Assembly: GCF_001194135.2 (NCBI RefSeq)
Contig: NC_068998.1
Coordinates: 10,792,121-10,856,120, forward strand
Length of the DNA stretch: 64,000 nucleotides
Reading direction: 5' to 3'
Origin: Octopus bimaculoides
Lineage: Eukaryota
Within the stretch, counting starts at the first letter, position 1. Each line of letters starts with the position of its first letter. Below the pieces are notes generated by a model that saw only the letters and a program-made list of their open reading frames with translations, did no database searches and was not told the DNA's origin. The translations under genes were made by a program, and so were the position numbers. This document shows, in pieces, positions 25,772 through 27,003 of the stretch.

Positions 25772-27003
25772 GTGAGACACAGTTAAAGAAAAGTGAAACT
25801 CACAATGGTTTTACAAGAATATCAGAGAAACAATTCAAACAGCAACAAATATAATTTACAAAGATAATATTAATGAAAATAAAGACAAAGGCTACAACTA
25901 TCTTATGCAGTTGTACATGGATTCAGCATTTTTGCCTGACGTGCTAATGATTCTGCCAGCTCACCTGGGGTTAAATAATATCTGCACAAAAACATCCAGC
26001 ACTGTAAGAAGAAGCATTTAGACTTGGGTCTGTTATGAGCTCTAGGACTCATAAGGTTGACATAGCATATTCCCATAGCATATACGTAACAGAAATTACA
26101 ACACTTCCTTCTGAACGGGAACACCAGTTCATCACAAGGTTAACTTTCCAGTTATCATTGACTCATTTACAGCTGAATGGACTAGCGCAGCATGAAATGA
26201 AATGCTTTGCTCCAGAAAACAAAATACTGCTTGGTTCAGGAATCGAAAACACAATCTTATGACACTCAAACTACTACTACTAGGCCAAATACTTTCATGA
26301 TAAAAGTATGGCCAGTACCTAGTTATGTACAGTCTAAACAAAGGCAATCTTTTTATTCAACTTAATGTGTTTGAACACAGGATATTGTGTTATTTACCTT
26401 GAGAGGACCTCTCATGGTGCAAAAAAGCATTCATATTTATATCGTTGACAAATAAAAACTGTCTGCTACAGCCTGCCAGAAATGTTATATCATGATTTCG
26501 CCCTGCCTGGACTCCTCAGTGGTAGGCATCCTGTAGCAATATCACAGCTGAATCTCCTTGTCAACGATCTATTCAGGCACTGATGTTACAAACAGCCAGT
26601 GGGCGTATTAAAAAGATAATTGATAGCAAACAGAAACAATATTAATACCAAAAGGGAATCTTTATATCCAACTTAATAGGGATGTTGTGTTTTTCCAATG
26701 TAACAACATGGATGGTTGAGATTGAAATTAACTCCCTTAATAACCTGACTAATAACAGTTTTAGAAAATTGCTTAATATATACTAGTATGAAGCACCAAT
26801 TTTTTTTCAAAGTTGATTTAAGAGGATGTGAGTGTTTTTTCTTTTTACAAAAGCATTTGCAATGCGATGAAAATGGAACAAAATGGTTATTAATCAATGA
26901 TCAAGTTAGATTTCAGGCTCAGTTCTCCTGGAAGTTACCACCATCATTATAGAATATAATACTGACCAAAAACTAAACTATAATCACACACAATAAAGGA
27001 TAT
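25772..27003 (-). other. U12-type (minor spliceosome) AT-AC intron, 1232 nt
   Basis: 5' end ATATCCTTTA; branch-site TTCTTTAAC about 10 nt before the terminal AC. Splicing restores the reading frame SSC-GA|T-GK (C-D-G-K). No GT-AG alternative restores the frame here. Confidence 0.9.

Follow-up and report, generated by a model that had tools for sequence, protein, structure and literature searches.

A probable ancestral U12-type AT-AC intron in the ADAM10 gene of Octopus bimaculoides, absent from vertebrate orthologues

The ADAM10/kuzbanian gene of Octopus bimaculoides carries, in the part encoding its disintegrin-like domain, a phase 2 intron that begins with AT and ends with AC and that is very probably a genuine U12-type intron, ancestral in origin and lost in vertebrates. 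This reading is built on splice signals, on reading-frame logic and on positional conservation, all of which are directly visible in the window (the whole stretch of DNA analysed, 64,000 nucleotides, positions 10,792,121 to 10,856,120 of the forward strand of NC_068998.1) and in orthologous genes. A preliminary description, made from the letters of the window alone, had proposed an AT-AC intron here. Its donor, branch sequence, terminal AC and exon join were all recovered on the minus strand at the positions in Table 1, and its assignment to the U12 type is upheld both by the signals and by U12-type introns, identical in codon and phase, in eight further genes of the ADAM10 family, which span five phyla.

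Table 1. Features of the window, orthologous introns and neighbouring genes. Positions are those of the window unless another sequence is named as the source; a slash marks a splice junction.
Feature	Source	Position	Strand	Size or score	Reading and basis
ADAM10/kuzbanian-like gene	Window	21040..43024	-	16 exons modelled, about 800 codons	tblastn, Pfam, joined open frame
Upstream exon	Window	27004..27108	-	105 nt	Encodes (S)ETSGPCCDGDKCTFISDKLCHKEEEQGCTYNSSC + GA; acceptor ttctatttcag/T at 27108
AT-AC intron	Window	25772..27003	-	1232 nt	Phase 2; disintegrin domain of ADAM10/kuzbanian orthologue
U12-type 5' splice site, AT subtype	Window	26995..27003	-		ATATCCTTT; direct reading
First in-frame stop on intron retention	Window	26973..26975	-		TAG; read-through C-EYPLLCVIIV-stop
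Predicted branch-point sequence	Window	25782..25790	-		TTCTTTAAC; direct reading and consensus match
In-frame TAA just 5' of downstream exon	Window	25783..25785	-		Open frame starts at 25782
3' terminal dinucleotide	Window	25772..25773	-		AC; direct reading
Downstream exon	Window	25687..25771	-	85 nt	Encodes T + GKRATCPTPTFKKNETLCNHNSKICLDG; donor GGT/gtaagt; tblastn, orthologue alignment
Alternative GT donor	Window	26988	-		GTGT/gtgattat
Alternative AG acceptor, paired with donor 26988	Window	25734	-		ttcaag/AAAA
Alternative GT donor	Window	27008	-		In Cys codon
Intron 13 donor, provisional model	Window	24646-24657	-		GTATTATCCTTC; TATCCTT out of register
SINE-like copies	Window	27150-27420, 20395-20530, 22477-22671, 23633-23706, 24337-24431
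SINE-like copies, further	Window	40951-41128, 41170-41234, 41531-41694, 56554-56814, 63765-63956
Runs of N, examples	Window	15347-16196, 31481-31918, 58815-59576
Runs of N in ADAM10 introns	Window	30451-30556, 31481-31918
U11 snRNA-like sequence	Window	34349-34466	-	56.3 bits	Rfam RF00548, gathering score 39
U1 snRNA gene	Window	7607-7770	+	132.6 bits	Full-length
U1 snRNA gene	Window	10484-10647	-	129.5 bits	Full-length
Open frame downstream of ADAM10	Window	4711-5037	-		Resembles P-loop start of dephospho-CoA kinase-type gene
Orthologous intron	Bradybaena similaris			6362 nt	AA/ATATCCTTG; GTCTTTAAC-N11-AC/TGG; AT-AC
Orthologous intron	Magallana gigas			429 nt	GA/ATATCCTTT; TTCTTTGAC-N8-AC/TGG; AT-AC
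Orthologous intron	Saccoglossus kowalevskii gene 1			743 nt	GA/ATATCCTTT; TTCTTTAAC-N9-AC/TGG; AT-AC
Orthologous intron	Saccoglossus gene 2 (convergent neighbouring paralogue)			386 nt	GA/ATATCCTTA; TTCCGTAAC-N11-AC/TGG; AT-AC
Orthologous intron	Branchiostoma lanceolatum			367 nt	GA/ATATCCTTT; AACCTTGAC-N10-AC/TGG; AT-AC
Orthologous intron	Porites lutea (coral)			2031 nt	AA/GTATCCTTT; TTTCTTGAC-N11-AG/TGG; U12-type GT-AG
Orthologous intron	Amblyomma americanum (tick)			662 nt	GA/GTATCCTTT; TCACTTGAC-N11-AG/TGG; U12-type GT-AG
Orthologous intron, 5' half only counted	Mytilus edulis L003				Donor AC/ATATCCTTTT (ATATCC)
AT...AC intron of dipteran-like ADAM10-like gene	L031 (metagenome)	about 1602-1731		about 130 nt	AA/ATATCCTTTT...ATATCCAC/TGG
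ADAM10-like gene	Saccoglossus L002	10001-19904	+		AT-AC intron
ADAM10-like gene, convergent	Saccoglossus L002	24813-29282	-		AT-AC intron
Metazoan SRP RNA gene	Saccoglossus L002	8681-8978		257 bits	Just upstream of first ADAM10-like gene

The 5' end of the intron, which reads ATATCCTTTATTG from 27003 downward on the minus strand, opens with a donor that matches the U12-type motif /RTATCCTTT exactly. At the other end, which runs into the next exon as CACTTTTCTTTAACTGTGTCTCAC/TGGTAAACGTGCGACTTGTCCA on the minus strand, the predicted branch sequence differs from the consensus TTCCTTAAC by a single C>T mismatch and was counted as a branch motif of the TTCCTTRAY kind; its second A lies 11 nt, and its last base 10 nt, from the intron's final base. 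The spacer that follows, TGTGTCTCAC, ends in AC and contains no pyrimidine tract, as the U12 type calls for; a branch A at some 10-15 nt from the 3' splice site is likewise expected of that type. A window-wide repeat check found no part of the intron recurring elsewhere in the window, and the idea that the intron is built of window-wide repeats was rejected.

An intron with these ends might instead belong to the rare U2-type AT-AC class and be excised by the major spliceosome. Such introns are expected to have an ATAAGT-like 5' site, a pyrimidine tract and a branch site that is both distant and degenerate. None of the three is seen: the 5' site is that listed in Table 1 and does not resemble ATAAGT, the branch sequence sits close to the 3' end, and no pyrimidine tract follows it. 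Furthermore, the orthologous introns with GT-AG termini carry GTATCCTTT donors and TTGAC branch motifs and so belong to the U12 class. What the two kinds of intron have in common is the AT-AC termini, and terminal dinucleotides alone do not set the class (PMC7367187). We regard a U2-type AT-AC intron as extremely improbable, and assignment to the U12 type is preferred.

The reading frame points to the same ends. The open frame of the upstream exon carries on from the exon ending at 28881 and reaches the donor as AAT TCT TCT TGT GA. Joining 27004 to 25771 gives TGT GA/T GGT, translated as ETSGPCCDGDKCTFISDKLCHKEEEQGCTYNSSC-D-GKRATCPTPTFKKNETLCNHNSKICLDG, i.e. ...NSSC-D-GKRATCPTP..., in one open frame and with the conserved C-D-G-x-x-A-x-C-P pattern restored. 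Between the in-frame TAA (25785-25783) and the downstream exon there is no AG, and the list of acceptors for this interval is empty; with the stop in place and no AG before the downstream exon, an in-frame AG acceptor there is impossible.

The preliminary description had gone further and held that the frame is restored only with these ends, which is too strong. Enumeration of every GT/GC...AG and AT...AC pair near the site yielded 50 in-frame, stop-free combinations, six of them GT-AG or GC-AG (examples of GT-AG alternatives are in Table 1), but only 27004/25771 gives the C-[DN]-G-x-x-[AP]-x-C-P spacing found in the alignment of 15 orthologues. The existence of the six leaves room for the view that the major spliceosome uses nearby GT-AG sites and that the AT-AC ends are coincidental, and automatic models of orthologues do pick such sites (Magallana P0202, Bulinus P0084). 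However, all six either lose the G-x-x-A-x-C-P segment or gain intron-derived residues, although the 5' part of the downstream exon is conserved as coding sequence across phyla; the alternative acceptors are without a pyrimidine tract, and U12 signals are kept at the exact site in the eight other genes. Use of GT-AG sites in place of the AT-AC ends is thus, in our judgement, highly improbable.

The 9-mer ATATCCTTT alone is not significantly frequent in the window, with three matches against 1.4 expected. The per-position frequency of ATATCCTT in the window is 2.3e-5, and that of a TCCTTAAC-like motif (with no more than one mismatch) whose end lies 8-14 nt ahead of an AC is 1.5e-4; the joint chance of finding donor and branch/AC at both intron ends is about 3.5e-9, a figure that is applicable because the protein alignment fixes both ends of the intron beforehand.

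The host gene was assembled from exons located by tblastn with vertebrate, mollusc and crustacean ADAM10 proteins; the human ADAM10 query served only to locate exons. In the joined protein, Pfam recognises Reprolysin_2/3/4/5, Disintegrin and ADAM10_Cys-rich domains (including PF13574, PF13688, PF00200 and PF21299), the HExGHxxGxxHD zinc site is intact, and the typical transmembrane/tail sequence (HWWAV...) is present. An ADAM10/kuzbanian orthologue is indicated by the reprolysin and disintegrin domains, the ADAM10-type Cys-rich region, the transmembrane helix and the proline-rich tail. The best database matches are named ADAM10, with identities of up to about 60-67% (molluscs, gastropods). In a search with the C-terminal half the closest relative, P0153, is 94% identical and spans the last exon only, and a 62-residue peptide across the junction had no match in the protein collection.

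All other introns of the gene, 15 in number, had been described as GT-AG. This was verified for the 14 others in the 16-exon model, which have pyrimidine-rich acceptors; the fifteenth would lie at the initiator (ATG/signal-peptide) exon, which was not located. The donors of the 14 are mostly of the GTAAG type, with GTAAC, GTAAT, GTGAGT, GTATGT and, provisionally, GTATTA (intron 13) also present, and no RTATCCTT donor motif occurs among them. Some GT-AG boundaries of the model have in-frame alternatives, and those of exons 13 and 14 are provisional. The provisional donor of intron 13 includes TATCCTT out of register, and the acceptor of this intron, TTTGTTTAAG, is weak.

The missing initiator exon, together with the draft state of the assembly (13 runs of N in the window), could suggest a pseudogene or an artefact of assembly, in which case the apparent intron would be functionless. 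Yet the 16 joined exons form a single open frame in which every ADAM10 domain and the intact zinc site are found, and there is no gap in or beside the AT-AC intron, so that this explanation is almost certainly wrong. Microsatellites of (TA)n border many of the gaps, and the two in ADAM10 introns lie away from the AT-AC intron. The window also holds a SINE-like interspersed repeat of about 200-260 bp with a (GAT)n end, of which at least 10 copies, 75-91% identical, are present; ADAM10 introns hold several of them, including one directly upstream of the exon at 27108. Further downstream of ADAM10 lies the kinase-like open frame listed in Table 1.

For orthologues, genomic sequence was taken for matches in the protein collection and the homologous codon was mapped. 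The eight genes with a U12-type intron at the same codon and in the same phase represent Mollusca, Cnidaria, Arthropoda, Hemichordata and Cephalochordata, and in each case the intron interrupts the codon next after the conserved Cys, between its second and third bases. The TCTTTRAC variant of the branch sequence recurs in Bradybaena, Magallana and Saccoglossus gene 1. In Mytilus edulis, the downstream G-x-x-x-x-C-P exon was searched for in L003 and not located. In Branchiostoma, Amblyomma and Porites the annotated protein is spliced precisely at the homologous junction, the annotated Saccostrea protein is continuous across the site with the conserved spacing, and an invertebrate donor stands at the site in metagenome contig L030. 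In Saccoglossus, the two ADAM10-like genes of L002 are convergent, and an SRP RNA gene lies beside the first (Table 1).

In vertebrates the region is a single exon at four genomic loci (L001, L011/L012, L013 and L015): it is uninterrupted in the teleost Sardina pilchardus and forms one exon bounded by AG and GT in the metagenome vertebrate sequences L011 (which matches L012), L013 and L015. The preliminary description had given a single 184-nt exon for human ADAM10. In agreement with this, at L011, the only vertebrate locus measured (85% identity to the human peptide), the exon comes to exactly 184 nt; the near-human metagenome contig L010 is cDNA-like and uninformative here. In addition, ADAM10 and ADAM17 are absent from the human and mouse minor-intron gene tables, the alphabetical list running at that point ACTR5, ADAMTSL5, ADAT2 (Olthof et al., 2019; PMC6717393 supplements). 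Rhagoletis (fly), Trichobilharzia (flatworm) and Halocaridina (shrimp) likewise have no intron at the site. The dipteran-like metagenome gene L031 has a short AT...AC intron at the site, in which the sole TCCTTAAC motif stands at the unusually large distance of about 53 nt from the 3' end (compare L008 and L028). Since the Rhagoletis gene is near-identical to that of L031 and is without the intron, a recent loss is suggested.

Either loss in vertebrates or gain in molluscs had been put forward for this distribution. Loss is the part that stands. For a gain in the mollusc lineage only the absences in vertebrates, fly, shrimp and flatworm can be cited, whereas a U12-type intron lies at the same codon and in the same phase in coral, tick, hemichordate (two genes) and amphioxus, and loss is far more likely than that five phyla should in parallel have gained such introns at a single site; we give gain in molluscs next to no credence. 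Because the intron is shared by coral, tick, hemichordate and amphioxus, it is taken to be ancestral. The simplest history is one in which cnidarians and bilaterians would have inherited it from their last common ancestor, and in which it would have been lost precisely on the vertebrate stem and independently in some arthropods and flatworms, and would have switched between the AT-AC and GT-AG subtypes at this one site. Minor introns are known to switch subtype and to be lost or converted in one direction (PMC7367187). They are also biased away from phase 0, with which the phase 2 position in ADAM10 agrees, and molluscs are relatively rich in them (PMC10639083).

The expectation that predictors confined to GT-AG would mis-annotate the intron is confirmed: at least seven public ADAM10 models are faulty at this site. 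Three of these end by reading into the intron, with ...C-K/T/E-Y-P... (P0001, Bradybaena; P0010, Mytilus; P0076, Saccoglossus), and two have EYPF or KYPL insertions (P0031, Ixodes hexagonus; P0120, Stylophora); P0084 (Bulinus) skips about 45 residues, and P0202 (UniRef, Magallana) splices from a GT within the Cys codon and leaves out exons. Faulty ADAM10 models can be flagged by the read-through peptide C-[EKT]-Y-P-[LFC]. By a criterion that the preliminary description itself had set, the novelty of the intron is lowered. It is correctly spliced in several public annotations (Branchiostoma, Amblyomma, Porites and, at the peptide level, Saccostrea) and is thus at least implicitly catalogued already, as an ordinary member of a well-known intron class. 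Our literature search found nothing linking ADAM10 or kuzbanian to minor splicing (U12-type, AT-AC).

From sequence we infer how the intron would be handled, namely the splicing machinery, the use of the junction in Octopus bimaculoides and the consequence of retention. Following the established minor-spliceosome pathway, U11 snRNA would pair with ATATCCTTT and U12 snRNA with TTCTTTAAC, with the branch adenosine bulged out at 11 nt from the 3' end; from the known pairing of U12, the C>T change in the branch sequence should still permit a G-U pair. U4atac/U6atac-U5 catalysis would then join TGT GA to T GGT. Were the intron retained, translation would run on for 10 extra codons to a stop that precedes the Cys-rich and transmembrane regions. 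With a U12-type intron in ADAM10, production of full-length ADAM10 mRNA is expected to depend on the minor spliceosome.

A U11 snRNA-like sequence lies in intron 6 of the same gene, in sense orientation to a host that has its own U11-type 5' site. The 5' end of this sequence, AUAGAGGAUC, has the potential for a 7-bp pairing with AUAUCCUUU; the U11-like copy has a weak Sm-like site, AAUUCUUAG, and a shortened 3' stem-loop. No upstream element or snRNA promoter obviously in common with the nearby U1 genes was seen, no tandem-repeat structure was found around the copy, and no U11 was found at the eight orthologous ADAM10 loci. The sequence could be a gene or a pseudogene; as a candidate U11 snRNA-like gene, it shows that parts of the minor spliceosome are apparently encoded in this genome. 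That the placement is more than coincidence, with U11 supply coupled in this lineage to expression of its minor-intron host through co-transcription or processing from the intron in a feedback loop, is very unlikely; the weak Sm site, the short stem-loop and the lack of a shared promoter or an orthologous copy do not speak for it. The two U1 genes of the window form an inverted pair about 2.7 kb apart, with a common upstream sequence of about 120 nt and the common 3' flank AAATCAAACAAAGAACAGAA; this conserved upstream sequence and shared flank suggest that a functional unit was recently duplicated.

Our knowledge of how minor introns work is unchanged by the ADAM10 intron. Its interest lies in the gene and its history: the principal Notch/cadherin sheddase is a minor-intron gene in most of the non-vertebrates sampled and not in vertebrates, which calls for caution in extrapolating minor-spliceosome phenotypes between vertebrate and invertebrate models. 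The site offers a clean, vertebrate-specific case of the precise loss of a U12 intron that is deeply conserved elsewhere, and the series of orthologues displays AT-AC/GT-AG switching at a single position.

Compared with the U12-type AT-AC class as a whole, the ADAM10 intron has the same /ATATCCTTT donor, a branch motif like TCCTTAAC some 10-12 nt before the end, no pyrimidine tract, an AC terminus and a non-zero phase, and it shares the deep positional conservation and the switching of subtype among orthologues. There is no structural difference; the C>T change in its branch sequence is common to several orthologues. The introns of Porites lutea and Amblyomma americanum agree with it in codon, in phase, in the RTATCCTTT donor and in having a TTGAC-type branch motif 11 nt before the end; their termini are GT-AG rather than AT-AC. 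The vertebrate ADAM10 gene (human, mouse, fish) has the same order of protein domains and the same flanking introns, after the Cys-Ser AG/ codon and after ...NG/, and the two Octopus exons, 105 + 85 = 190 nt, correspond to 184 nt in the vertebrate locus L011. In contrast to the Octopus gene, however, the vertebrate gene has one exon here, with no intron at this codon, and does not appear in the human and mouse minor-intron lists.
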